The notes below the pieces were generated by a model. The model was not told the DNA's origin. It searched no databases and saw nothing but the letters and a program-made list of their open reading frames with translations. This document shows, piece after piece, positions 3,084-61,045 of a stretch of 64,000 bases of DNA; position 1 is the stretch's first letter, and each line of letters starts with the position of its first letter. The translations under genes were made by a program, and so were the position numbers. Source of the stretch: Octopus sinensis (Eukaryota); assembly GCF_006345805.1 (NCBI RefSeq), contig NC_043019.1, positions 8,059,360 to 8,123,359 of the forward strand, given 5' to 3'.

Positions 3084-3753
3084 ATATGAGCATATATGTG
3101 TGTGTGTGTGTGTATATATGTATATGAGCATATGTGTGTGTGTGCATATATACATGAATTTTAGCACAAGGCCAGCAATTTTGAGAGAGAGTCAAGTCAA
3201 TTTCATCGAACCTGAAGATATGGAAAGTAAAGTCGACCTCGAGAGATTTATGATCCAGCAACCATAATTTGTAATCCTGTACATGCTGACACATTTTAAT
3301 ATATAATGCTGTGGCGAAGAAATAAGTTAGAAATGGATTCAAAAGTTCTTCGCTGCACATTTCGAATTAATTATAGTTTTTTAACGCCATTTTTACGCTA
3401 GATATTAGAATATCATTTTGTCTAGGTGAAACACTGGTGAAATAACTTCGTATATTAAACAACTTCGTTTATATACATAAACTGTATTGTACAGCATAGC
3501 TGTTATGATTCTAGAGAAATGTAAGCGCACTTCAATCTGGAAATACAGATAAGGCCTTGCTGAAAAAAGAGCGATTTCAAAGCGCTCCAGCGTTCAGGTA
3601 TCTACTCGTAAAGCGGTACTGAACTCATCACCTTAGGGTTAAAAAGCAAGATTTTTAGCAGCAAACAAACCATCATCAATACGTGCATACGGAGGGGTAT
3701 AAATAAGTACAAGTATTTTTACTCACCACTCCCTCTCTCTCTCTCTGTATATA

Positions 3754-5316: not shown

Positions 5317-5367
<51 letters not shown>

Positions 5368-5471
5368 AATGCATATATAAATATTGATGGATAGATACAT
5401 AAAGCGATTGATTGAATGATTGATACATATCTACACACACACGCGAACACATTCATATATATATATATATA

Positions 5472-5509
<38 letters not shown>

Positions 5510-6121
5510 GGGGGGGAGAGACACATAAATACCCAGTCATCCCTTTAGATATTTATGTTTTGTGCTGATTTGGCTAATTTTCCCTCTCTTTGACTTTGCA
5601 CACATGTTGAAAATGGCGAAGTTTTGGCGAAGCAATCTTCCAGTAAATGACTTCGATTCACTCTGTTATTTGCCGTTTCTTCTTCCCAGCCTCACTCCTC
5701 TTCCTCTTCCTCCTTCTCTTGTTCTTCTTTTAACCCATTCGTTTCTTCTTTTACTTCTTTCTTCTTTGTTCCTGCCGAACCATTGTTGATTTCTTGTCTG
5801 TCTACGCTTTTCTCCGTTTTTTTTATTTTTCTTTTCAACTTTCTCATTAGTAGTTTCACTTCGTAATGTTCTTATTCTTCAAATACCGCCATGATGAAGA
5901 AGAAAGAAAAGAAAAAAACTGGCGGTGACGTACCTAGCTACAAAAACCTCTTTTATACAAGAAAACAAAAGCGACATACGCTCGCGTTCAATGGGACTAA
6001 TGTATGGAGTCTGTTGAAAGAAAAACACAATTAACCAAAACATATATATGTGTGCGTGATTGTGTACGTATGTACGTGTATATGTGTGTGTGTATACATA
6101 TGCATACATACATACATACAT

Positions 6122-6170
<49 letters not shown>

Positions 6171-6499
6171 CTAGCAGTATCGCCCGGCGTTGCTCAGGTT
6201 TGTAAGGGAAATAACTATAAAGCATTTTTAGAGAGTTATAGCAAAAAAATGGAAAAAAATGATGGTAAATTATCCGGTTTGTGTTTCTGATTCTCGACCC
6301 CATGTCGAATTTATCGATTTTTTTCAGAACTGGGGGAACTTTTCAAAATTTTCGCTGCGTTAGTTTTGAATTATGACATTGGGCTATGTGTGTGTCAAGT
6401 TTCATCAGAATCGGTTGAAAGCTGTGGTCAGGGTGAGGGTACAAGCAAACAGACACACAGAAACACGCACAGACAAACTGCCGTTTATATATAGAGAGA
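6171..6499 (-). mobile_element. Non-autonomous Helitron, 329 bp (copy 1)
   Basis: Minus strand starts A|TCTCTCTATATATAAACGGCAG and ends with a GC-rich hairpin (CCTGAGCAACGCCGGG) followed by CGATACTG-CTAG|T. These are canonical Helitron 5'-TC, 3'-hairpin-CTAG termini at an A|T target. Confidence 0.8.
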
Positions 6500-9471: not shown

Positions 9472-9921
9472 CTTTTCAGGATGGTCGATGCAGTAAGAAA
9501 TCGAATAAACAGGAAATATAAAAACAAAAACAAATGTACGTTTCTGCGTACTGAGAAAGTTGGAAAAAGGATTTATTGTCCGTTTGTAGAGCAAATAAAT
9601 TATAACCGTTTAGCCGAACATTATTTCTGCTTTCGTTGGGGCTGATAACGTTGAATTTATATAAAGATGGATTCAACACTCACAAAACATGAAACGGTAT
9701 TCATGTTCTGGCTGTTTTCTTATTGTCCGCAATAATTGGGTTACTCAATATTTTTCTTTGTATCTTATTCAACGTACAAACACATATTCATGTACAAACA
9801 CACACACACACACACGCAAGCATGCACACACGTACACACAAATACACACACATGTATGTATGTGTATGTGTATATATATATGTGTGTGTATATATGTATA
9901 TTATATATGTATATATGTATG

Positions 9922-10043
<122 letters not shown>

Positions 10044-10044
10044 C

Positions 10045-10385
10045 ACAAGAGTGGTGTGTGGTAAGTAGCTTGCTTACGAACCACATGGTTCTGGGTTCAG
10101 TCCCGCTGCACGGCACCTTGTGCAAGTGTCTTCTACTATAGCCTCGAGTCGACCAAATCAATGTGAGTGGATTTGGTAGATGGAAACTAAACGAAGCCCG
10201 TCGTATATATATATGTGTGTGTGTGTATGGTATGTATGTGTGTGTGTGTCTGTGTTTGTCCCCCAAACATCACTTGACAACCGATGCTGGTGTGTTTACG
10301 AACCTGTAACTTATCGGATCGGCAAAAAGACGGTGATCCAGCTTGGTCGCAGTCAAATAACTGAAACAAGAAAAAGAATGAAAGA
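10045..10385 (+). mobile_element. tRNA-derived SINE, family A, internally deleted
   Basis: Head gtgtggtaagtagcttgctt...gggttcagtccc, central ccttg(t/g)gcaagtgtctt domain and tail gcagtcaaat(a/g)actgaaacaag all match 12061-12469. Confidence 0.85.
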
Positions 10386-10554: not shown

Positions 10555-12060
10555 AAATAAATACAATTCATTAAAATGACAGTTCCGTAATGCATCTCCT
10601 CATTTCATAGAAAGAAAAACAGCAGAATGAAGGAAATATCTTCATTTATATAGAAGATCAAAAATATAATCACAGAAGCAAAAAAGAAACAAATACATGC
10701 AATACAGCAAGAAAAGCATGTGTGTGTGTGTGTGTGTGTATACAATCACATACATTTATTTGTATATGTAACTTTTATTGTTTCTCGTAGCTGAGATAAC
10801 GCGCCATTAGCGCCACCGGCTAAGTGCGTACGTCTTCTTCGTTTTCTTGTTAAGCACATTACTGCCAAGAACTGGTAATAAAGTGATGACAAAATCTGAT
10901 ACTGATAGCTTTTGTATGGATAATTAACTAATTAAATAAAGCAGCCATAAGTAACCCTAACAGATGGCAAGGGTCATACAGGGTTCATGCTTAATATATA
11001 TTATATTATAATTCCTTTGGATCAGAGCTTAGACAAGTCTAGTAATAACATTATCAGTAAATGAACGCAAACCGTGATGCTTAACTACGGAACAATTAAT
11101 ATTCTCTAATAACATCTTCACGTTTTCTACAGGATACTGTTTCATTAACTGGCTGATGGAAGAAAAAAAGAAAGAAAGAGAAAGAGTGAGAGAGAAATGG
11201 AAGAAAAGAAAGGGGGAGAGACAGAGATGGAAAGAGACAGACAGAGGAAATGAGAGGATAGTGAGGAAGAGAGCAGACGGAGAGAAGGAGGCAGGGAATG
11301 AAAGCTGTTCTACTTCAGCTTAGCTCATCGTTAAAGCCTACCTTTCCATATTTATCTTCGCATTTCCAAAGAAGATTTGTTAAAGTACAAGAAATTAGCT
11401 TAGTTAATGTCTCTGAGTTTCTCTATTTCCGTTGCGTCTTATTTTTCTCTATCTTCCATCTATAGAATATACTGTTAGGAAGTCTCCACTACGTGTTGTT
11501 GTATTCTGACCAAGCTTTTTTCAATGTCGAATATAGCAATGCTTTATGCATGAATGTAGAATGGCATAATTCTTTTCAGCAAGTGCAGCTTGCTGGCGAA
11601 AATGTTTCTCTGTAAATTTTGAGAATATTGTGTATTTCTTATTCCAAAATTCTTTAAGTCTCAACTTGCAGCCAATCGAAGGAATCTTACCTAGCTTTTT
11701 TTTTTTTTTTTTTGTAGAGCTGATATAGGTCTTGGTTCACTTCGAAATTCCACAAGAATTTCTCTCGATAGTTCCACGATCTACGATAGCTGACTTCGCG
11801 TTCCTTCGTTGTCATGGTGTATCTAAGGTAATTTTCCTACGTGGCTTCTTTTTCACTATTTGGCTGCTGCTATGATCATTTCAAAATAGTTTAGTTCTTT
11901 GCATTTGCTCAAAAAGGAAAACCATTTATTTTACCAGGCTTCTATTAATACCAATATTTATAGGGGATAGTAGTCATTTTACGGGGGAATGAATAGTCTT
12001 CTTAGCAAAGGAGTCTATATATAATGCTATGAAACATGTATGTTCTCGTATATATATATA

Positions 12061-12469
12061 GGCACAGGAGTGACTTTGTGGTAAGTAGCTTGCTGACCAA
12101 CCACATGGTTCCGGGTTCAGTCCCACTGCGTGGCATCTTGGGCAAGTGTCTTCTGCTATAGGCCCAGGCCGACCAATGCCTTGTGAGCGGATTTGGTAGA
12201 CGGAAACAGAAGGAAGCCTGTCGTATATATGTATATATATATGCGCATGTGTGTGTGTTTGCGTGTCTGTGTTTGTCCCCCTAGCATTGCTTGACAACCG
12301 ATGCTGGTGTGTTTACGTCCCCGTCACTAAGCGGTTCGGCAAAAGAGACCGATAGAATAAGTACTGGGCTTACATTGAATAAGTCCCGGGGTCGAGTTGC
12401 TCGACTAAAGGCGGTGCTCCAGCATGGCCGCAGTCAAATGACTGAAACAAGTAGAAGAGTAAAAGAGTA
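12061..12469 (+). mobile_element. tRNA-derived SINE, family A, full length
   Basis: A-box/B-box-like head (tggtaagtagc; ggttcagtccc), central domain, internal (TA)/(TG) tract and tail ctaaaggcggtgctccagcatggccgcagtcaaatgactgaaacaag. Inserted in (TA)n. Confidence 0.92.
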
Positions 12470-13335
12470 TATATATGTATGTATGTATATATGGATGGCT
12501 GGATGGATGCGATAGATCAATTGGCACCGTTTTATGTTTTTAATTTCGGGCATGCGCATTGTTGTTTTGTTTTTTTTCTCGACTACACAGTATAGGGAGG
12601 TCAGTTTTTTCGTCTGAGAAAAACCAAAGCATGTTCGATTGGAGGAGATGCTTGAGTTTGTTGAAAAGCTTCGCAGACATATATATATATATGTCCTGGG
12701 TATGACAATCAGCTGCACCCAGTGGCAAGGCCCCAGTTCGGGAGTCCAGGAGCTGTGGAGAATGTGGAGTTACCCCTTAGTTATCAACACTTGCAAGTCT
12801 ATCTGGTCTGGAATAGTAGTACGTGTTAGGACCCCATTTATGAGTTAAATAATTACCTTACACGAGTGACGCCGTTGAGGTATTATCAGACACTGATAAG
12901 AACCATGGAGAGTATACTTAAGAGCACTAGGGGTAGAGCCCCAAATCTCGGGGTTTACCCGCTCTAGATAGATAGATAGATGAATAGATAGAGAGATAGA
13001 TAGATATACCGAAAGAAGAGAATGAAATATATTTTGGTATTAAGAAGACACAGTTTGGATTTTAACCCCGTCCAGATATATGTATGTGTGTGGATGTATC
13101 TGCTTGTATCTGTGTATATTTGTGTATTTTTATTAATCAAAATGGATGTGTGCATGTCTCACCCATCATGTATGATTTAACTTTCCAATTCATGTGTTTG
13201 TGGTAGTGTTATATCTTTTATATATGAACAGGCGAGGTTTCACGTGTGTGTAAGAGAGAGATAGGAGAACAGAGCAAATGAGTTAATAGATGACAGCGAG
13301 TGAGAGTTTATGAGAGAAGCGAGAGATATATAGAA

Positions 13336-13383
<48 letters not shown>

Positions 13384-14161
13384 GGAACATAGCGAGTTGA
13401 GATTTCTAAGCTGGAGTGATATCTGTCTTGTTAAGGCTTCCATAGTGTAATACACCCCGGCTTCTCTGTTCTATATCAGATAACCCTATATATCAGTCAG
13501 GAAGCCTTACATAAGGCGAGCGGTTCCTGTAAAAAGAAAACGAAAATGTTATGATTATAGAAACTTAGGCATGTGAATACAAACGGATCCAGAGCTGCTC
13601 TTACGAAAAGGCACAGAGACAGCGAATGATATATATATATATATATATACACTCACACACACATATATATATTTGTATATATATATATATGCATATATGT
13701 ATATATATACATATATGCACACACATAATATATACATACATACATGCATACATATATATCTGTTCTGTGTGTGTCTGTACGTGCGTTTCAGCGTGTATTT
13801 TCGTGTATGTGTGTGTGTGTGTGTGTATGCACGTGTGAGAGTGTGTGTCTCTATGCATACATTTGCATGTGTGCGTGTGTGTGTGTGTGCGAGCGTGTTT
13901 GCATACATTTTATATACGTTTTCACACACACACATGCACGCACACAATCACACACACACACACACACATATTCATGTAAATGGAAAGGTATATAATATAC
14001 ATGCACTGCACAAGCACACACAAATACACACACTCGCACACTCTCGCACGCACACACACACGCTTGTATACATGGATACATATATGTGTATGTGTGTATA
14101 TATATATATATATATATGTGTGTGTATATATATATATAATATATATATGTATATATATATA

Positions 14162-14214
<53 letters not shown>

Positions 14215-15784: not shown

Positions 15785-15915
15785 CGGAGGCCAACAGTAC
15801 TGGTACTTAGTATATCGACCGCGAAAGGACGAAAGGCAAAGTCAACCACGGCGGACTTTGAACACAGAACGTAACGGCAGACGAAATGCTGCTAAACATT
15901 TCGCCCAGCCTGCTA
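15785..15915 (-). mobile_element. tRNA-derived SINE, family B
   Basis: Reverse complement of gtgttcaaagtccgccgtggttgactttgcctttcgtcctttcgcggtcgat, homologous to 17499-17700. Confidence 0.8.
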
Positions 15916-17133
15916 ACCATTCTACAAACTTGCTGCCATAATCAACGAAGCCATATTTGTTTCAAATTTTGGTACAAGGTGAACAGTTTCGAGGAACGTT
16001 GTAATCGATTTAGATCGAACCAGTGAATAACTGGTATTTGTCGTATCGACTCTGAATCGCCGAAGTCATTGAAATTCATTCTCAAATGTTGACTTTCATT
16101 TGTTCGCGGTATAATCCTTGCATCCTACAGCTTTCTTCTATATGAGTCAATATACTCACAGACTACACACCTGTACGCGACTACACACCTATTTATCTAG
16201 AGAAAACTAGATATGTTTGTCGATCACCTGTGCACATATGGCAGATATACAAGTATGTATTATCTTGAGCATATATGTCGAAATCTTTCAACAAACTTAA
16301 CTTTCCTAACAACAGTGAGTAAATTTCTTATTAAATAATATCTATTAAATAATTAATTAGTAAAAACAAACTGAAATATTGCTTTCAGTTTAGGAGAGGA
16401 TAGCTTTACGCAGTCTCCCGGTCGAAAACAATTTCTCTATTCAATTTATCTTAATTTCATTTCTTTTGAAGTGCTTAATGTTTTTCTTATCATTCCTCTC
16501 GACCGTTAAATTCATTATTAATACTAGTTTATCATGTTCTACGTAATTGTTACTGCGCAATACACACATAAGAAACTTAGCAATGCAATGGAAGCAGAAG
16601 CGAGTAAATTATGTTGCAGTCTTCGTTAAACAGCAGCAACTTATATTTAACTGAACACATGTGTTACATTCTGTTAATAGACATAGCTAACATCGTTCGC
16701 GGAGAGAGAAATTTGTGACGCCCCATTGATGTAATTATTAGTTGTAATTTTTGTGCGTTACCTTATATGTCTGTTGATTGAGCAGACGCACATATGATTA
16801 GCTAAATTCACTCTATCAACATACGACTTTATTTGCCTTTGTCTATAAAGCATTCACGACTAGATTAGCAAACGAACATTTCACATTTTAAGAAGATATG
16901 ATTTAAGAACGTTTTGGCAGTTATCTCTAGAAGTCGAGAGATAACATAGAAACAACATCGTTGAGGGAGATATATTTTAGTCATTTATCTACGCACGCAA
17001 CCCACACAATTTTCAGCAACTATGATCGGATTGATAATCTGGAACATTTAGTAATTCTGAGGTTACATCATTTAATCACAAATTGTTGCAATTTAACCTG
17101 TTGATTAGTTTTTATCTCAAAACCGTAGCTATT

Positions 17134-17700: not shown

Positions 17701-18260
17701 GGCTGATAAAGAATCTATCTATAGTATGAAATCGAATTTACATTCTGAATGGACCTAGCTATTACTTATGTTTTTGCGTAATTACGTGACTTTAACGCAT
17801 CATCTAATTAGCGATGATATCAATGGCATAGCCATCTTAAAATTTCTAGTTGCGAATACAGAATATTGTGAATACGCTACATGGTATTTTGCCTTGCATA
17901 TTCTGAACCGGAAACCAACTTTTATCACCATTAACGTAACGGGACATAAATGCATGAAGCCTGATTGTTTTGACCGGTATTAATATAAAAATATTTGAAC
18001 GCAACATATTTGTATAAACTCTGTACGGTACATGTATATGAATTATATTTTTCATAGCAGTATGAGATATATCAATGGAAAACGAGTTCTGTACGAATCT
18101 CGCTGTATAATCCCCAGGTAATTATAGATTGAAAGGAAAATACGAAAACAAAATGACAAAAAAAATAACGGAAGCGCATTAAAACGAAATGAATAATGAA
18201 AATACAGGTAGATAAAACGTGTTTAAGAAATAAAAAAAAAATGTAGTGGTTCTGGTTTGA

Positions 18261-18661: not shown

Positions 18662-19213
18662 TCGAAAAGAAAGTGGAGATATAGTGAAGGTACAAAGACC
18701 TCGAAACTGAAGTTGTCAAGATATAGGACATAAAGGTGAAAAGAATACCAGTAATAATTGGAGCATTGGGCATGGTAAGAAAAACAAATGAACAAAAACG
18801 TAGAAGCTATACCTGGATCCTCACTACTACACAGTGTCCCAAAATGGCCCTGCTAAGTACAAGCCACATACTGCGCAAGACACTATCAAATCAATAATAT
18901 AACCTAAACAAAACAATCCTGGAACACAAAATACACTTTATACAGCAAATATCCAATGAAATAAACTATCACCAGTAGGTTGGATACTCAATGCATTACA
19001 TACACAATCCACACTACAAATACTAATACAAGAAAAGACTGCACCACACTCCATAAAGTAAAGAAAGTTACAATAAAATACAGGGTAGTGTTTACACACA
19101 CCCAACAACAAAGAAAACAAAATACTGCAGACCTTCCTGCAAAACGAAAGTGTAGCAGGTGACGGATTAGAATATTGCCATATGGTGAATAATGACAATA
19201 ATAATAATAATAA
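18661..19213 (+). mobile_element. R4/Dong-clade non-LTR retrotransposon 3' fragment (family 1)
   Basis: Degenerate ORF RYKDLETEVVKI*DIKVKRIPVIIGALGMV...ALLSTSHILRKTLS matches the C-terminus of the restriction-like endonuclease domain. A 3' UTR ends in (TAA)n, and (TAA)n/(TGA)n lies upstream. Confidence 0.85.
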
Positions 19214-21513
19214 TTATAATTTGATGGCAGTTGGCCTTTTTCACACGGTCGTTTTTGATAACGAACCGATTTCTATTTCTCAAACCGTAGCTGGTTTCAT
19301 CACATTTGTTGCCCAAGGAAGACATGTTATTTGACCCTGTGGTACTTCCAGCGTGTATGTGATCGGGGAAGTTGTATCATTGATCACTATTCTCGCATGC
19401 TACACAAACATGAGTAAAAACAATGGCGACAGAAGCATAATTGAACTGTAGGAAGACAATACAAAAGAGTAAAAGCTTTATTTAAAACAATAACATTCCG
19501 AATGAAAGCCATGCACGCTGTTAATTTGAAAGCATTCACAGTTTCATGAAGTGAAAGTCTTATATTATTAAGAAAGATCATCCTCTTTAATCCATAACTA
19601 TGTGATACTTTCCATGCCTTTCACTTTCTTTTAACCCACTTTCTCTCTCTTCATCTCTCTTTCCTATAGATTTATCTTCCTATCAGACGCATCATTTCCC
19701 GCTTTCATCTCAATCATTGCTTGAACTATTCGCCAACCTTATCTGTATCCTTCCTCCTTTTATCTATTTCTCTTTCAGTTCTTCGCTTCTATTTCACGCT
19801 TCATTTTATTCTACTTCCTTCTCCTCAGTTCCAAGAAATAGTCTTACTCCCTCCTCACTCTCCCTCCTCTCTCTCTCTCTCTCTCTCACTCTGTTTAACA
19901 GTCTCCTAATCCTCTTCTACCTCTTCTCCTTTTTCTCTGAAGTGGAATTTGTCAGTTCAGTCTGAAATCCAGGAAATCGGGTCAAATAGAAAGCGGGGTG
20001 CTTACAGCGCAGAGAAAACGCTCTGGTTAAGCTTCTTTGTCTAAAAATACTTTCGTCGACATCATGTATTAATTATGTAACATATTCGACCTTCAAGAAA
20101 TAGTAGTCAAATTCCCTCAAATTCCACCAACGACATGATATATATGTACCTAATCATGCGTCTATATAATAACCCTGTTTCCCCCAATATAGTGACGAAC
20201 TGACAACTCTTAGGAGAGCCACTCCATGGTCAACTGATGTCCTAGATATAGTAGGCATATGTACCTCTAATCGCATGTTTTGTCTATTTAAATAAAAATA
20301 AAGATAAAAAATAATGAATAAAAATTTTATAAAAATTATGGAAACACATGTTTGACTATGTAGTGCTTCAATTCCCAGGCGATGAGTTGTGATGGATGGA
20401 CCATGTTTTAGCGTTGATCTGTTTAGCGTTGACTTGCGGGTTCAACAGCAACAGCAACTACCAAACAACCATCTAATCAAACCAGCTTTCAACGAAACCA
20501 TCCATTTAACTATTCACTTACGAAGGCTGCAGCAGCAGCATCCATCCATCCCCAACCAACCCCCGACCATTTAACCACAATTCCATCTATCTAACCATCC
20601 ATGTCCTTTCAACAATCCAAATATAATCCCATGCCAATCACCACCTAACACATCTACATACACACACAACGATGACATAGAGAAAAGTTGAAAGGAAGCA
20701 CACCTACATCGCAACCTCACTTCCCTCCCCACCATCTCAATCAAACCCTCTCACACTTTCTTCCATCCCACTCTTTCTTTAACTCTTTCCTATCCTCTTT
20801 CATCATTTTATTCTCTTTTGTTCATCTCCTTTATTAATCCCTTTCTCTATATCCTCTCCGCATCCTCGTTCCCTTTCTTTTTTTCTGTCTTTCTTTCACT
20901 TCCTCTCTCTTTCTCTCTTGGTGCTACGCAATGAACCGCTTCCTACTCCGACACTCTCAATGAAACTCTGTCCTTCCCTCACTTTCAATACTTCCCTCTA
21001 TTACTTTCTCTATCTCTTCCACTCTTTTCTTTACTCCTTCTCTCTATCAGTCAATCACTATCTTCCTCTTCCCACTCTGATTCTCTTTCATTCTCTTTCT
21101 TTTTCATTTTCTCTCTCTCTCTCCCTCTAACCATTTTCTCTCTATATTTATTAATCTATATTTTATCTCTCATTAATCCTTTCATCCTCTCTCTCTCTCT
21201 TATCACTTGCTCTCTCCCTCTCTCTTTATATATATATATATATTTAACGCTTCCCCTTCTATCTTTCACTCCTCCTCTCTCTCTTCTCCTTTCTTTCCAA
21301 AACCTCCTATCACGAAGTCATTACCCTAATGAATGCTCCGTAACCAGAGACAACAGTTAAGGTACATACAGCAAGTTTGATCATTTTCTCCCTCTCCACA
21401 TCTCTCTCTCTCTCTCTCTCAGTCTTCCTCTCTCTTTCTTCCTCTCTCTTTCTTCCTCTCTCTTTCTCTCAACATCATCATCTCACTCAGTCTCTCCTTG
21501 CTATTCTCTCTCT

Positions 21514-28451: not shown

Positions 28452-29163
28452 CTAGAGGATGGGATCAGTCGTGCAACAGAAATCAACATAGAAACTTTAA
28501 GAAAAGTTCAACACAACAACACACCTTCCCCGAAAATACTACCTTACATATCTACATACAACCCCAGAAACAAAGAAGCCTTCACCATCATCACCCAGAA
28601 TTTACCAATACTTCATAAAAACCCAAAATTAAAGGAAATTCTAAACATACACCAAATCATTAAAAGCTACAAACAGCCTAAATCACTTAAAAAGATTCTC
28701 ACAAAGGCAAAATTGTCTTCTAAAATTACGGATGCAAAAGTAAAAAAATGTGGTAGATCGAACTGTGCAACATGTCCTAACCTATTGGAAGGATCAGAAT
28801 TCTTCTTTAAAGAGGGACAGAAATTCAAGATCAAATCTAACTTTACTTGTGCCTCTGAAAACATAATTTATGTTATTAAATGCTCGGGCTGCCACCAAGA
28901 CTACGTGGGTTCAACGGGACTATCACTCAGGCGTAGATGCACACTGCATCGACAACAGATTGCATTCCCAGAATATAGAATGATACCTTTTAGTGAGCAC
29001 ATTGAAATGCGCAAAGCAAATACTGCCACAATTTTTAATCTTCCCATTTTACCAATGTGCTTTCGGATCATCAACACAAATGAGACTGAACAAGGAAACA
29101 TTCTTCATTGAAAAGTACAAACCCAGACTCAACCATCCGAACATACTGACACAGAGAAATTAA
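28452..29163 (+). pseudogene. PLE ORF C-terminus: linker, Cys motif and GIY-YIG endonuclease, one frameshift near 29007
   Basis: LEDGISRATEINIETLRK...LPYISTYNP...KKCGRSNCATC...NFTCASENIIYVIKCSGCHQDYVGSTGLSLRRRCTLHRQQI...PFSEHIE, frameshift, then CAKQILPQFLIFPFYQC...RLNKETFFIEKYKPRLN...*. Stop TAA at 29161-29163. Confidence 0.92.
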
Positions 29164-33480: not shown

Positions 33481-33894
33481 GTGTGTGTGTGTGTGTGTGT
33501 GTATAATGTATGTATATTTCAATTAGGATTATATACAACCTGAAACTCAAAGTAATGGTTAATATATTTCTGGCTTTGTGCAACTGACCGATTACAAGTT
33601 TACATGTAAATGCAAAATATGATGGGATCTGTCTAAAAACTCTCCCGATTGGCCAAATTGACTGAATTAAGCATTTGTTCTCTCTCTTATCACTTTGATG
33701 AAATGAGGATTCGTATAAGCTTAAACCTGATACAGAAATTGTACGGCATCTTTGATATGAAATTCATTTCAACGTTATTTTTCTGTAACTGTTTAAGTAT
33801 TGTTTCGTTAATTAATTTCTTCCCTCCGAAAACCAATGTATTTGAATTCCTTTGTGATGTATTCTTATGGCAGTAAAATATATTTATCGAAAGA

Positions 33895-34510
33895 CTGCGA
33901 GCTGGCAGAAACGTTAGGACACCTGGCGAAATGCTTAGCGGTATTTCGTCTGCCGCTACGTTCTGAGTTCAAATTCCGCCGAGGTCCACTTTGCCTTTCA
34001 TCCTTTCGGGGTCGATTAAAAAAGTACCAGTTACGCACTGAGATCGATATAATCGACTTAATCCGTATGTCTGTCCTTGTTTGTCCTCTCTGTGTTTAGC
34101 CACTTGTAGGTAGTAAAGAAATAGGTATTTCGTTTGCGTTACGCTCTGAGTTCAAATTCCACCGAGGTCGACTTTATCTTTCATCCTTTCTGGGTCAACA
34201 AATTAAGTACTAGCTGCGTACTGGAGTCGATCTAATCGACTGCCCCCTTCCCCAAAATCTCCGGCCTTGTGCCTAGAGTAAGAAAGAATATATATTTATC
34301 GAATGCGCCGAGTTTTGAGCGCGCCGAGCGAAAAGCTTATTAGCATTTCTTCCGTCTTCACGTTTTGATTTCAAATTCCGCCGATATCGACTTTGTCTTA
34401 CATTCTTTCACGTTCGATAAAGTAAGTTGTAGCTGAACATTGGAGTGTATTTAATCGACTAATCCTTCATCTAAAATTGCCCACCTGTGCTAAAATTCGA
34501 AACTGTTACG
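33895..34510 (+). mobile_element. Three head-to-tail family B SINE copies
   Basis: gagttcaaattcc(g/a)ccga(g/t) B-box segments at about 33965, 34148 and 34370, each followed by a gtcgactttg/a...gat...aatcgact body. Confidence 0.88.
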
Positions 34511-35749: not shown

Positions 35750-36204
35750 TTAGGTAAAAGCCTGAAATTTGGGCGAAGTGGCGAGTCAAATATATTGAAT
35801 TCGATGTTCAATTAGTAGTTATTTCATCAACCTGGAAAGGTTTAAAAAACAAAGTCGACTTCTGATCAGTTTGAAGTCAGAAAGTAAAAACAGAAATAGA
35901 TGCTTAGCGTTTTGTACGGTGGACAAACAAATCTGCCACCTCGCTGACTTTTCAGAGTTAATAATGCTAAATATAAATCGTTTCCACTAAATGCACAAGG
36001 CCTGGACTTTTCCGGGGAGGCGGGGCCAGTCGATTTCAACAACTTTAGCGTTCAATTGGTACTTATTTTATCGAACCTGAAAGGTTGTAAGGCAAAGTCG
36101 ACCTCGGCGGAATTTGAACTCAGAACATATAGCCGGACGAAATGCAGATGAGCATTTTTCTCGGCGTGCGCACAAATCTGCCAGCTTGCTGCCTTTACTG
36201 TAGG

Positions 36205-36247
<43 letters not shown>

Positions 36248-36472
36248 TAATAATAATAATAATCTATTCTACTCTAGGCACAAGGCCCGAAATTGTGTGG
36301 GAGGGGGCCAGTGGATTAGATTGACCCCAATACTCAACAGGTACTTAATTTATCGATTCCGAAAGGATGAAAAGTTAAGTCAGACACGGCGGAATTTGAA
36401 CTCAGAACGTGGCGGCAGGTGAAATACTGCTAAGCATTTCTCCCATCATGCAAACGATTCTGCTAACTCACT
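35750..36472 (-). mobile_element. Three family B SINE copies, minus strand, variably decayed
   Basis: aaagtcgac...ggaatttgaactcagaac motifs at about 35850, 36095 and 36385. Confidence 0.8.
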
Positions 36473-36502
36473 GTCTTAATAATGATAATATTATTATTAT
36501 TA

Positions 36503-38724: not shown

Positions 38725-38912
38725 TGTTTATCACCCCCATCGCTTCACAACAGTTTTTGGTGTGCTTATGTCCCCGTTTCTGAGCGTTTGAGCAACAGAG
38801 ACCGGCAGAATAAGTACTAGACTTACAAAGAATAAGTCTTAGGGTCGATTTGTTCGACTAAAGGAGGTACTCTAGCATGGCCGCAGTCAAACGACTGTGA
38901 CAAGTAAAAAAA
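38725..38912 (+). mobile_element. Family A SINE, 3' half
   Basis: cccccatcgctt...ggtgtg...gaataagtactag...ctaaaggaggtactctagcatggccgcagtcaa. Confidence 0.8.
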
Positions 38913-39135: not shown

Positions 39136-39144
39136 AGGAAGAAA

Positions 39145-39376
39145 TACCTGTTTCTTTATTACCCACAAGGGGTATAACACAGAGGGGACAAACGAGGACA
39201 GACAAATTAAGTCAATTACATCGACCCCAGTCATTAACTGGTACTTATTTAATCGACGCCAAAAGGATGAAAGGCAAAGTCGACCATGGCGGTATTTGAA
39301 CTCAGAACATAACGGCATCCGAAATACAGCTACGCATTTCGCCCGGCGTGCCAACGTTTCTGCCAGCTCGCCGCCT
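39145..39376 (-). mobile_element. Family B SINE, tail-to-tail with 38927-39135
   Basis: Reverse complement of ggcggcgagctggcagaaacgttggcacgccgggcgaaatgcgtag...gttcaaataccgccatggtcgactttgcc. Confidence 0.9.
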
Positions 39377-39743
39377 TAACCTGGAAGAAATATCTTTAAG
39401 ATGTATAACCAAGTGACATGAAAATTATAGAACACACCAACGAAAAATATACTCGAAGACAAAAAGAAAAACCTTATCGCGAAGAGATCGAATGATAAAT
39501 GTGCCACGAAATTCGCAAGTCTGACAAATATATTCTCGCTTTTGTTTTTGCCTTCAGGATGAAGATTGCAAATTAGTTCACATCTTGATGGAAGAATTGT
39601 AAACATTAATCATTTATGATATTTTCTCTGCAATTTATCCTTTCCTTTATCTTTCACTCTTTTCAGTCAATATACATCCAACCATGCTGGGGCACTGCCT
39701 TCCAGAATATTTGTTGGTCGAACAAACTCACCGTAGTACATTC

Positions 39744-40354: not shown

Positions 40355-40468
40355 AATTCTTCATCAGTTATCGACCAAAAATACTCATACTCAGTTTCGT
40401 GCATTTAACGTTAAGACAGAGGTACGAAACTAACTATTATTTGTTTGATCGATAACTGATGAAGAATT
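40355..40468. other. 114-bp imperfect palindrome (hairpin)
   Basis: Perfect 20-bp outer arms AATTCTTCATCAGTTATCGA / TCGATAACTGATGAAGAATT, plus inner arms tcagtttcgtgc / gtacgaaactaa. Confidence 0.85.
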
Positions 40469-40647
40469 TTATGACATTTGCCTGTTTTCCATTTGTGTCT
40501 TTCAGTGTCCGAAAAAATAGTTCATGTTCCATTTACTCGTACTTCGTACTTCTTTTTGTTGTACACGTTTCGTGACGTCCTGTACCTACATATGCGTATA
40601 TAGATATACGTATAGATGTAAGTATGTACATATATGTATATATATAT

Positions 40648-40672
40648 GTACTAGCTACGGCGATACATATTG

Positions 40673-40704
<32 letters not shown>

Positions 40705-40754
40705 GGCCCCCTGCGCAAGGATGACACGCAAATTCGTGAAGCGTTCCATATTTT
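40648..40754 (+). ncRNA. U6: U6 spliceosomal snRNA sequence, full length, most likely a retrocopy
   Basis: GTACTAGCTACGGCGATACATATTGTAAAATTGGAACGATACAGAGAAGATTAGCATGGCCCCCTGCGCAAGGATGACACGCAAATTCGTGAAGCGTTCCATATTTT. The ACAGAGA box and AGC triad are intact. The 5' stem is disrupted, the ISL has an extra C, and no recognisable PSE or TATA lies upstream. Confidence 0.97.
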
Positions 40755-40810
40755 CCTAAACGGCGGTGCATCAGCATGGCTGTAGCTCTGAGCTGAAACT
40801 AGAAAAAAAA
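40755..40810 (+). mobile_element. SINE/LINE-type 3' tail fused directly to U6
   Basis: cctaaacggcggtgcatcagcatggctgtagctctgagctgaaactagaaaaaaaa aligns with the family A tail at 12405-12456 and ends in an A-run followed by (TA)n. Confidence 0.85.
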
Positions 40811-40858
40811 TATATATATATCATATTATATATATATATTATATATATAATGTATATA

Positions 40859-49280: not shown

Positions 49281-49310
<30 letters not shown>

Positions 49311-49379
49311 ATATATATATATATATATGTAGATACAAGTATATTATACATATATATTTATATACATCTCTTAATTTAT

Positions 49380-49560
49380 TTGGAAAGTAGCTTGCTTGTC
49401 AGCTACATGGCTCCGGATTCAGTCCACTGCGTGGCCCCTGGGCAAATGTCTTCTGCTAGAGCCTCGGGTCGACCAAAACCCTGTGAGTGGATTTGGTATA
49501 TGGAAACTGAAAGAAGCCCGTCGTATATATATGTTAATGCATATGTGTGTTTTTTGTGTT
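49380..49560 (+). mobile_element. Family A SINE, 5' half
   Basis: agtagcttgctt...ttcagtccactgcgtggcccctgggcaaatgtcttctgcta...gagtggatttggta...gaagcccgtcg. Confidence 0.85.
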
Positions 49561-60015: not shown

Positions 60016-60559
60016 TGTCTATCCTGTTCAAAGATACACGGAAAATAATCAATATTTTTATCTCGCGTTCCGTCAGATTTCTCTCAATCTTTCTTTCCAT
60101 GTATCTCTCCATATTGTCTTCCCCTCTGCTCTGTGCGTGCTCATACACATCTGCAAGTTTGCCTCGATCATACACAATCACCCGAAACAGCAGATGCATG
60201 ATGTTGTATAAAACAAACGACAGCCCTCTGCATCTCTCATCCACGTTCTCCATCTCCTCTCTCTTCCTTCCTCTTTTCTAAAACACATGGCATATATTTA
60301 TATACGTGATCACATAGAGACACAGTCAAAATGCTAACTAATAGAATTTAGAACGAATCAGTCGCCATAACTCACCGCTCTTCTTTGTTTGTACCTCTCT
60401 GTCCATCTAACACAAACGAACGCATGTAAAAACGCACTCAAATACGGGTGAAGCCTTTTACACACACACACACTCACTCACAGATACACCCACATAACAC
60501 ACGCATTTCCAGATACATATGTGTACATTTTGATAATTTACCTCTTATTTGTTTCGAGT

Positions 60560-60722
60560 ATTAGACTGCGGCTATGCTGGGGCAACTTTTTGGAGAATAT
60601 TCAGTAAAATTACTCAACCATAGTACTTGTCTTTTAAAGCATGATATTTATTTTATCGCTGTTCCTTGCCCTTCCGCTAAGTTACGGTGACGTAAAGACA
60701 TCTGGACCAGTTAGTTGTCAAG
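60560..60722 (-). mobile_element. Family A SINE, 3' half (diverged)
   Basis: gactgcggctatgctggggca...ccgctaagttacggtgacgtaaa...ttgtcaag. Confidence 0.7.
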
Positions 60723-60837: not shown

Positions 60838-61045
60838 CACACGCCGGGCGAAATGCGTAGCCGTATTTCGTCTGCCGTTATGTTTCGAGTTCAAATTATG
60901 CCGAGGTCGACTTTGCCTTTCATCCTTTCGGGGTCGATAAATTAAGTACCAGTTACGCACTGGGGTCGATGTAATCGACTTAATCCCTTTCTCTGTCCTT
61001 GTTTGTCCCATCTGTGTTTAGCTCCTTGTGGGCAATAAAGAAATA
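60838..61045 (+). mobile_element. Family B SINE lacking the extreme 5' end
   Basis: cacgccgggcgaaatgcgtag...gagttcaaattatgccgaggtcgactttgcctttcatcctttcggggtcgataaattaagtaccag. Confidence 0.9.

Follow-up and report, generated by a model that had tools for sequence, protein, structure and literature searches.

Chimeric pseudogenes in which U6 is fused to L1 were reportedly the first of their kind to be described, in mammals, by Buzdin in 2002 and by Garcia-Perez in 2007. In human cells, ligation of U6 to L1 RNA by RtcB before retrotransposition has been demonstrated and acts through the 2′,3′-cyclic-phosphate end of U6 (Moldovan 2019, PMC6789731). The first-pass annotation of the locus described below had treated U6 chimeras as a matter of mammalian L1, which proved too narrow. 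The account of Doucet et al. (2015, PMC4476161) includes about 40 U6-L2 or U6-Mon-1 chimeras in platypus, and U6-L1, U6-L2 and U6-RTE as well as six U6-AnolisSINE2 chimeras in the lizard Anolis; it credits them to template switching from LINE or SINE RNA to U6 during reverse transcription. In vertebrates such chimeras are well known, among them ones fused to tails of stringent LINEs or of the SINEs that partner these LINEs. The SINEU elements of crocodilians (Kojima 2015, PMC4494074), which are headed by U1 or U2, i.e. by Pol II snRNAs, form amplified families with subfamilies, shared deletions and master copies.

Within the genus Octopus, a published annotation of O. vulgaris (Bonar et al. 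2026, PMC13282606) contains one family labeled 'SINE/U-L1' (52,753 bp; two recently active insertions of 353 bp in total, ~176 bp each) and one labeled 'SINE/U' (369,490 bp; 19 recent insertions averaging ~734 bp). Both labels were produced by an automated pipeline and stand in the paper without sequences or description. Among LINEs, that annotation has RTE, Dong-R4, CR1 and L1-Tx1 as abundant groups. The earlier statement that no U6-headed SINE is known from molluscs has to be amended, since these snRNA-type labels exist, uncharacterised, for O. vulgaris. A literature search for U6-retroposon-tail chimeras in molluscs found no published description.

Here we describe a unit of 163 nt (40648-40810) in a 64-kb stretch of Octopus sinensis DNA, referred to as the window, that begins exactly at nt 1 of U6. 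The first-pass annotation had read it as a 107-nt U6 ending in TTTT and joined without spacer to a 56-nt tail with an A-run, and both direct reading and the Rfam match agree with that description. The unit and its immediate surroundings comprise the following features.

40637-40647, no strand: 5′ flank (TA)5.5, TATATATATAT, directly 5′ of U6 nt 1; candidate left target-site duplication or microsatellite target
40648-40754, plus strand: U6-derived segment, full length, 107 nt (Rfam RF00026, 100.5 bits)
40755, plus strand: junction base C, assignable to neither U6 nor tail
40756-40802, plus strand: retroposon 3′ recognition module, 47 nt, two hairpins followed by GAAAC.AG; variant of the tail common to the local SINE families
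40803-40810, plus strand: A8 run, end of the unit, at the same position as the (GTAAAAGA)n terminal repeats of SINE copies
40811-40823, no strand: 3′ flank (TA)6.5; candidate right target-site duplication

Like the mammalian U6/L1 chimeras, the unit consists of a full-length U6 with a short U-tract, directly joined to the 3′ part of a presumed LINE and followed by an A-run; like them, it would be an inert retrocopy with template switching or RtcB ligation as candidate mechanisms. Mammalian L1, however, is 'relaxed' and poly(A)-dependent, whereas the octopus tail is a structured two-hairpin module of the 'stringent' type and only 47 nt long. With the platypus and Anolis chimeras, the unit shares a U6 whose 3′ end is joined, both partners facing the same way, to the 5′-truncated 3′ end of a stringent LINE or partner SINE, and target-site duplications that are short or unclear (PMC4476161). 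It differs from the platypus U6-L2 chimeras in its full-length U6, almost all of those being 5′-truncated (PMC4476161), and from the platypus and Anolis chimeras in its mollusc host and its insertion into a (TA)n microsatellite. An snRNA head, a LINE-related tail and an external parent promoter are also found in crocodilian SINEU (PMC4494074), but in the 84 kb analyzed the octopus unit displays no SINEU-type family property, and its head is of the Pol III type. The O. vulgaris 'SINE/U-L1' family comes from the same genus, carries a label that stands for an snRNA-type head and has insertions of ~176 bp as against 163 bp; this likeness is one of label and size only, the paper giving neither snRNA type nor junction (PMC13282606). 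Our unit might correspond to that family.

The U6-derived segment

Scanning the whole window against Rfam with cmscan yielded a single match at gathering threshold, namely U6 (RF00026) at 40648-40755(+), scoring 100.5 bits where the gathering score is 44 (E=6.2e-25). The match is complete (model positions 1-105 of 105) and not truncated. In the same search of the 64-kb window, no further snRNA genes were found near the unit. The segment contains an ACAGAGA box as well as an AGC triad, and the TTTT at 40751-40754 that ends it is like the UUUU of mature U6.

From nt 26 to nt 107, the segment equals human U6 apart from one additional C at 40707-40711. This base lies within a run of C (GGCCCC run) in the invariant GGCCCCUGC stretch. 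All eight substitutions relative to the human sequence fall inside the first 25 nt, most of them within the 19-nt 5′ stem-loop. The first 25 nt of U6 are lineage-variable. In the stem, the human pair G3-C17 is replaced in a compensatory manner by A3-U17; the UACG loop belongs to the tetraloops of the UNCG type, and the sole non-canonical pair is C4·A16. As judged from these features, the 5′ differences probably represent a lineage-specific octopus U6 gene rather than decay. The private mutations, with human U6 instead of a cephalopod U6 gene as the reference, would comprise the additional C and perhaps A16, i.e. at most 1-2 changes in 107 nt. It had been proposed that shared changes in the 5′ stem could serve as markers of a repeat family; with 8 of 8 substitutions in the lineage-variable part, these probably belong to the octopus U6 gene itself and hence would not by themselves diagnose a SINE family.

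The promoter of U6 genes is external and lies upstream, so that a retrocopy does not carry it along. Over the 60 nt 5′ of U6, the sequence is TA/TG low-complexity, and TATA-like strings are unavoidable there; we know of no defined PSE consensus for cephalopods. Behind the terminator follow the retroposon tail and the A8 run, and no unrelated DNA. Taken together, the gene context leans towards a pseudogene.

Junction and flanking sequences

The junction reads ...CCATATTTT, then C, then CTAAACGGCGG..., with U6 and tail fused in the same orientation and without spacer. The C at 40755 was aligned by cmscan with the fifth U of the U6 model, and the consensus CTAAA of the SINE tails starts one base later. 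The 56-nt tail (40755-40810) consists of this C, then CTAAACGGCGGTGCATCAGCATGGCTGTAGCTCTGAGCTGAAACTAG, then A8; as a query for the partner LINE, the 3′-terminal string of this variant is ...GGCTGTAGCTCTGAGCTGAAACTAG(A)n.

The flanks (40470-40647 and 40811 onward) are made up of unique or simple sequence and lie outside any larger repeat. An 11-nt direct repeat, TATATATATAT, is found on both sides of the unit, but it lies within a low-complexity microsatellite and is therefore no proof of a target-site duplication. The tail alone is not enclosed by a direct repeat: the closest string common to both of its sides is CATATT, 13 nt past the A-run and within the TA tract, and a target-site duplication around the tail alone was rejected accordingly. 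The first-pass annotation had likened the (TA)-rich setting to that of the local SINE insertions, and the comparison holds. The unit is flanked by (TA)5.5 and (TA)6.5, and the SINE copies have comparable borders, with (TA)n on the 5′ side and ...GTAAAAGAGTATATAT on the 3′ side, while TA microsatellites make up only about 4-6% of the window. This shared context points to the same insertion machinery and the same kind of target.

A string of 9-11 nt occurs both in U6 (40697-40707, ATTAGCATGGC) and in the tail (40770-40780, ATCAGCATGGC; AGCATGGCC in the SINE consensus). It is located off the junction and, by shuffling, is probably a chance resemblance (p about 0.05-0.09). An origin of the tail from U6, or microhomology at the junction, via AGCATGGCC was rejected on the basis of the same shuffling.

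Approximately 180 nt 5′ of the unit, and apparently unrelated to it, lies a 25-nt inverted repeat (40355-40379 / 40444-40468), whose arms are 96% complementary and 64 nt apart and which has a hairpin or MITE-like shape.

Local SINEs and their shared tail module

The tRNA-type SINE of the window (SINE-A) ends in CTAAAGGCGGTGCTCCAGCATGGCCGCAGTCAAATGACTGAAACAAG(TAAAAGAG)n. It is represented by a full-length copy at 12053-12456 and by further copies at 10034-10377, 38738-38910, 49381-49556 and 60542-60591(-). A 20-kb segment of Octopus vulgaris chromosome OX597840.1 (L003) was analyzed alongside, giving 84 kb in total. SINE copies in this segment reach 95% identity with the copy in the window; its 20 kb contain no U6 and no variant tail. 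An ORF across the 3′ half of SINE-A shows 79% identity to an O. vulgaris 'hypothetical predicted protein'. For comparison of the 3′ ends, a tail HMM was built from 12 SINE tails, excluding the U6 tail, and both strands of the 64-kb window were searched with it. The tail modules and the SINE-A copies used for counting T runs are as follows.

12405-12458, plus strand: 3′ tail module of the full-length SINE-A copy 12053-12456 (HMM E=2e-19)
38858-38910, plus strand: SINE tail module (HMM E=9e-16)
10326-10377, plus strand: tail module of a SINE whose body is a deletion variant (HMM E=2.5e-14)
60542-60591, minus strand: tail module of a SINE with another body upstream (HMM E=1e-11)
61-114, 3107-3157, 3515-3568, 5364-5415(-), 6337-6385 of the O. 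vulgaris segment: SINE tail modules
10187-10239, 14135-14187, 17745-17798, 19007-19060, 19813-19865 of the O. vulgaris segment: SINE tail modules
12053-12456 of the window and 9825-10235, 6006-6377 and 3164-3563 of the O. vulgaris segment: near-full-length SINE-A copies for the T4 count

Across the window and the O. vulgaris segment, the same ~50-nt module was found on at least three or four different upstream SINE bodies. It thus behaves like a tail that several SINEs have in common, as a LINE-derived recognition tail should. Its organization in these octopus SINEs is two hairpins, then GAAACAAG, (GTAAAAGA)1-3 and usually (TA)n. By analogy, the octamer terminal repeats, which resemble the ends of CR1-type LINEs, suggest a CR1-like partner; an RT ORF as a handle on this partner was found neither in the window nor in the O. 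vulgaris segment.

SINE-A copies lie in or beside (TA)n on both sides (5′ flanks 9960-10040, 12030-12060 and 49300-49380; 3′ flanks 12458-12490 and, in the O. vulgaris segment, 115-135 and 3570-3600), and an internal (TA)n(TG)n stretch is present at 12223-12275. This setting suggests either a preference for microsatellite targets or priming of the partner LINE on TA repeats.

Relationship of the U6 tail to the SINE tails

The first-pass annotation had regarded the tail as homologous to the local SINE 3′ end and at the same time as a distinct variant of it, and our comparison corroborated both statements. The U6 tail is collinear with the SINE 3′ ends at 12405-12458, 10326-10377, 38858-38910 and 60542-60591(-). 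The HMM derived from SINE tails alone matched 40762-40806 with E=0.019, its sixth-best match, which lies directly 3′ of U6 and in U6 orientation. In BLAST comparisons with O. vulgaris SINE copies, the tail reached 78% identity over 55 nt (E=6e-4), and it agrees with the consensus of the SINE tails at about 66-71% of positions.

The SINE consensus tail and the U6 tail are predicted to adopt the same fold, i.e. two adjacent hairpins followed by GAAAC, with folding energies of -15.8 kcal/mol (z=-2.8) for the U6 tail and -17.8 kcal/mol (z=-3.3) for the SINE tail. In the alignment of 13 tail sequences, 89% of paired cells were complementary in register, compared with 19-45% when the 3′ partners were slid. 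All 12 hairpin pairs are kept in the U6 tail, despite about 30% divergence from the consensus. Six changes of the U6 tail affect paired sites, and pairing is preserved at each of them (6/6); hairpin 2 contains two compensatory double changes, U-A>C-G and C-G>U-A. The chance that six random substitutions would all keep pairing is 0.001-0.008 (kappa 1-4), or 0.07 if only transitions are considered.

Because the 12 pairs were maintained through compensatory changes, the U6 tail appears to stem from a distinct lineage and not from a decayed local SINE copy. The conserved 82 nt of U6 beside the tail carry one change only. As the adjoining U6 is nearly unchanged, the tail must have diverged, with its structure intact, before the fusion, and post-insertion decay does not explain the divergence. 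On this comparison, the tail was putatively donated by a related LINE or by some other SINE subfamily, not by the dominant SINE. Judging by its predicted fold, we infer that the tail is a functional-looking, LINE-derived module that could recruit a LINE reverse transcriptase. No second copy of the variant was found in the 84 kb, a weak negative at this scale.

A further tail variant, GGAAGGCAGTGCCCCAGCATGGTTGGATGTATATTGACTGAAAAGAGTGAAAGA, is located at 39640-39730(-), ~1 kb upstream of the U6 unit. Its hairpin 1 is conserved and its hairpin 2 region is different, which indicates that several tail lineages coexist.

Origin of the unit

We consider the unit to be, more likely than not, a sporadic chimeric retrocopy of U6 and a retroposon tail, which arose in the course of LINE reverse transcription through a template switch or through ligation of the two RNAs. 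A mature full-length U6 with its UUUU end would have been joined to the last ~47 nt and A-run of an octopus LINE RNA, or to those of a SINE borrowing the tail of such a LINE, and the composite inserted into the (TA)n microsatellite by target-primed reverse transcription. In this process, the LINE reverse transcriptase would bind the two-hairpin 3′ module, prime on a nicked TA-rich target and copy the module first and U6 next. U6 might be reached either by a template switch onto its 3′ end or through prior RNA ligation via its 2′,3′-cyclic phosphate. Reverse transcription would then run to U6 nt 1, and the cDNA would be joined to the target. We infer this order of events, as well as the enzyme. 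The two routes are not separable from sequence, and the four-U end fits mature U6 in both. Further genomic copies, if any, would mostly represent independent events and not the offspring of a master copy. Probably lacking the external U6 promoter and carrying an additional C in an invariant stretch, the product is most likely inert.

Several observations count in favor of this origin. The complete U6, starting from nt 1 and abutting the microsatellite, speaks for a retrocopy, and the direct fusion in the same orientation, after exactly four Ts, to a homologue of the SINE tail with an A-run speaks for a chimera. Further points in its favor are the intact hairpins of a tail that had diverged before the fusion, the (TA)n setting common to unit and SINE copies, and the T4 between head and tail, taken up below. 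Counting against it are (i) the missing unambiguous target-site duplication, the 11-nt TA repeat being low-complexity; (ii) the missing donor LINE or SINE with the exact tail variant in the 84 kb; (iii) the 'SINE/U-L1' family annotated in O. vulgaris, whose two recent insertions come close in size to our 163 bp; and (iv) the position of the junction within a few nt of the start of the module shared by several SINE bodies.

The last point bears on a reading that we hold to be unlikely but which deserves detailed consideration, namely that the unit is one copy of an amplifying, SINEU-like family of U6-headed SINEs, in which a chimera became the master and was mobilized by a LINE recognizing its tail. 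A head, a structured LINE-type tail and an A-run formally constitute SINE architecture, and other SINE families have their module 5′ boundary within a few nt of our junction; such a position fits a preferred switch or ligation point and a stable SINE architecture alike. The O. vulgaris families 'SINE/U-L1' and 'SINE/U' (PMC13282606) and the crocodilian snRNA-headed SINEs, which exist despite external promoters (PMC4494074), also speak for a family. The published 'U-L1' label, however, arose from automated classification with no sequence given, and chimeras formed independently of each other would also be grouped into such a 'family' by a repeat finder. Both U6 and the tail variant are present as a single copy in the 84 kb of the window and the O. 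vulgaris segment. An amplifying family would moreover have to be transcribed, but it is established knowledge that the U6 promoter is external and upstream, and it is absent from a retrocopy. The intact TTTT (40751-40754) between head and tail presents a further obstacle. In the near-full-length SINE-A copies (n=4, 372-411 nt), the sense strand contains 0 runs of four or more Ts, compared with 7 per kb in the window. Such an absence fits selection against interruptions of Pol III transcription, and it follows that T4 is probably an effective Pol III stop in the octopus genome, which makes a U6-TTTT-tail RNA unlikely as a single Pol III transcript. As it stands, the unit does not lend itself to transcription as one RNA, although read-through or transcription by Pol II might occur. 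Overall, the indirect evidence leans against a self-amplifying SINE. What the two options offered by the first-pass annotation, a chimera or a family, have in common, a retroposed U6 with a LINE- or SINE-type tail, is well supported, and the family has found no support (one copy in 84 kb; T4).

Two other explanations dispense with a chimeric RNA altogether. A genuine U6 gene, with a 5′-truncated SINE or LINE fragment inserted by chance right behind its terminator, would account for the full-length and nearly perfect U6, for the T4 at its end and for the TATA-like strings upstream. It would require, however, that the insertion started with the very base that follows T4, and the tail alone is not bracketed by a direct repeat; moreover, the microsatellite runs right up to U6 nt 1, as it would at the edge of a retrocopy, the additional C occurs in a universally invariant stretch, and other snRNA genes are absent nearby in the 64-kb window. 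We regard such a coincidence as very improbable. Even less credence is given to an artefact, by assembly or by DNA-level recombination, that joined a U6 copy and a SINE tail inside the microsatellite. The locus is indeed embedded in long (TA)n tracts that are hard to assemble, but U6 and tail meet precisely, collinearly and with matching orientation, where U6 naturally ends and close to where the module naturally begins, and an A-run closes the unit; retroposition leaves such a signature, a random mis-join does not.

As a sporadic chimera, the unit would show in a mollusc what is known from vertebrates as a by-product of LINE reverse transcription, the capture of U6 by template switching or RNA ligation, and it would constitute a small, datable marker of which octopus LINE lineage was active. 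The tail variant, with its compensatory hairpin changes, would point to a second LINE or SINE tail lineage beside the dominant SINE. The unit also offers a natural snapshot of a presumed step in SINE birth, the acquisition of a LINE recognition module by a small RNA, with the junction almost exactly where other octopus SINE bodies meet the same module. Should copies turn out to be amplified, U6 would be added to the few SINE head types and the question of transcription would be raised. Such a family would be the first SINE with a Pol III type-3 snRNA head on a stringent LINE tail, in a mollusc, and would imply either read-through of the U6 T4 terminator or master copies driven by Pol II. No host function is implied for the unit, and its relevance is for transposon specialists.

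Database searches and neighboring repeats

The ORF at 40655-40777(-) (40 aa), which runs across the junction, was compared with 5.8 billion proteins; it matched five generic U6-antisense ORFs, none with the tail. This negative is uninformative, since the ORF of the abundant SINE-A has only two entries in the same protein collection. An exact look-up of 10 ORFs around the U6 unit found none on record. Pattern searches returned two junction-pattern matches in JGI metagenome contigs, a collection without cephalopod genomes, and one tail-pattern match in a Pirellulaceae MAG (IMG/VR and GTDB genomes, no cephalopods). All three were dismissed as chance matches, the first two being without U6. A U6-antisense ORF with a TA-rich insert (P0002) was rejected as a relative of the unit as well; it belongs to an unrelated decayed U6 beside a histone H2A gene in a eukaryotic metagenome contig, ENA ERZ27257546 k141_688580 (L005). 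In this U6 copy, at positions 2606-2767 of the contig, the 5′ stem is separated from the AAAGTTGG region by inserted (TA)n.

Elsewhere in the window, the ORF at 28713-29111(+) (132 aa) contains a CxxC...C motif and, behind it, a GIY-YIG-like one (IIYVIKCSGCHQDYVGST...). These motifs suggest the endonuclease found at the C-terminus of Penelope-like elements; the match to Pfam GIY-YIG (E=0.014) was below the cut-off, and the search against 5.8 billion proteins gave no matches for this ORF.

Finally, a further interspersed family of ~240 nt, with copies 78-86% identical, is present in both the window and the O. vulgaris segment, at the following positions.

39140-39380, 33891-34131(-), 60840-61043(-), 15799-15917 and 36054-36479 of the window: copies of the ~240-nt repeat
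13687-13917(-) of the O. vulgaris segment: copy of the ~240-nt repeat
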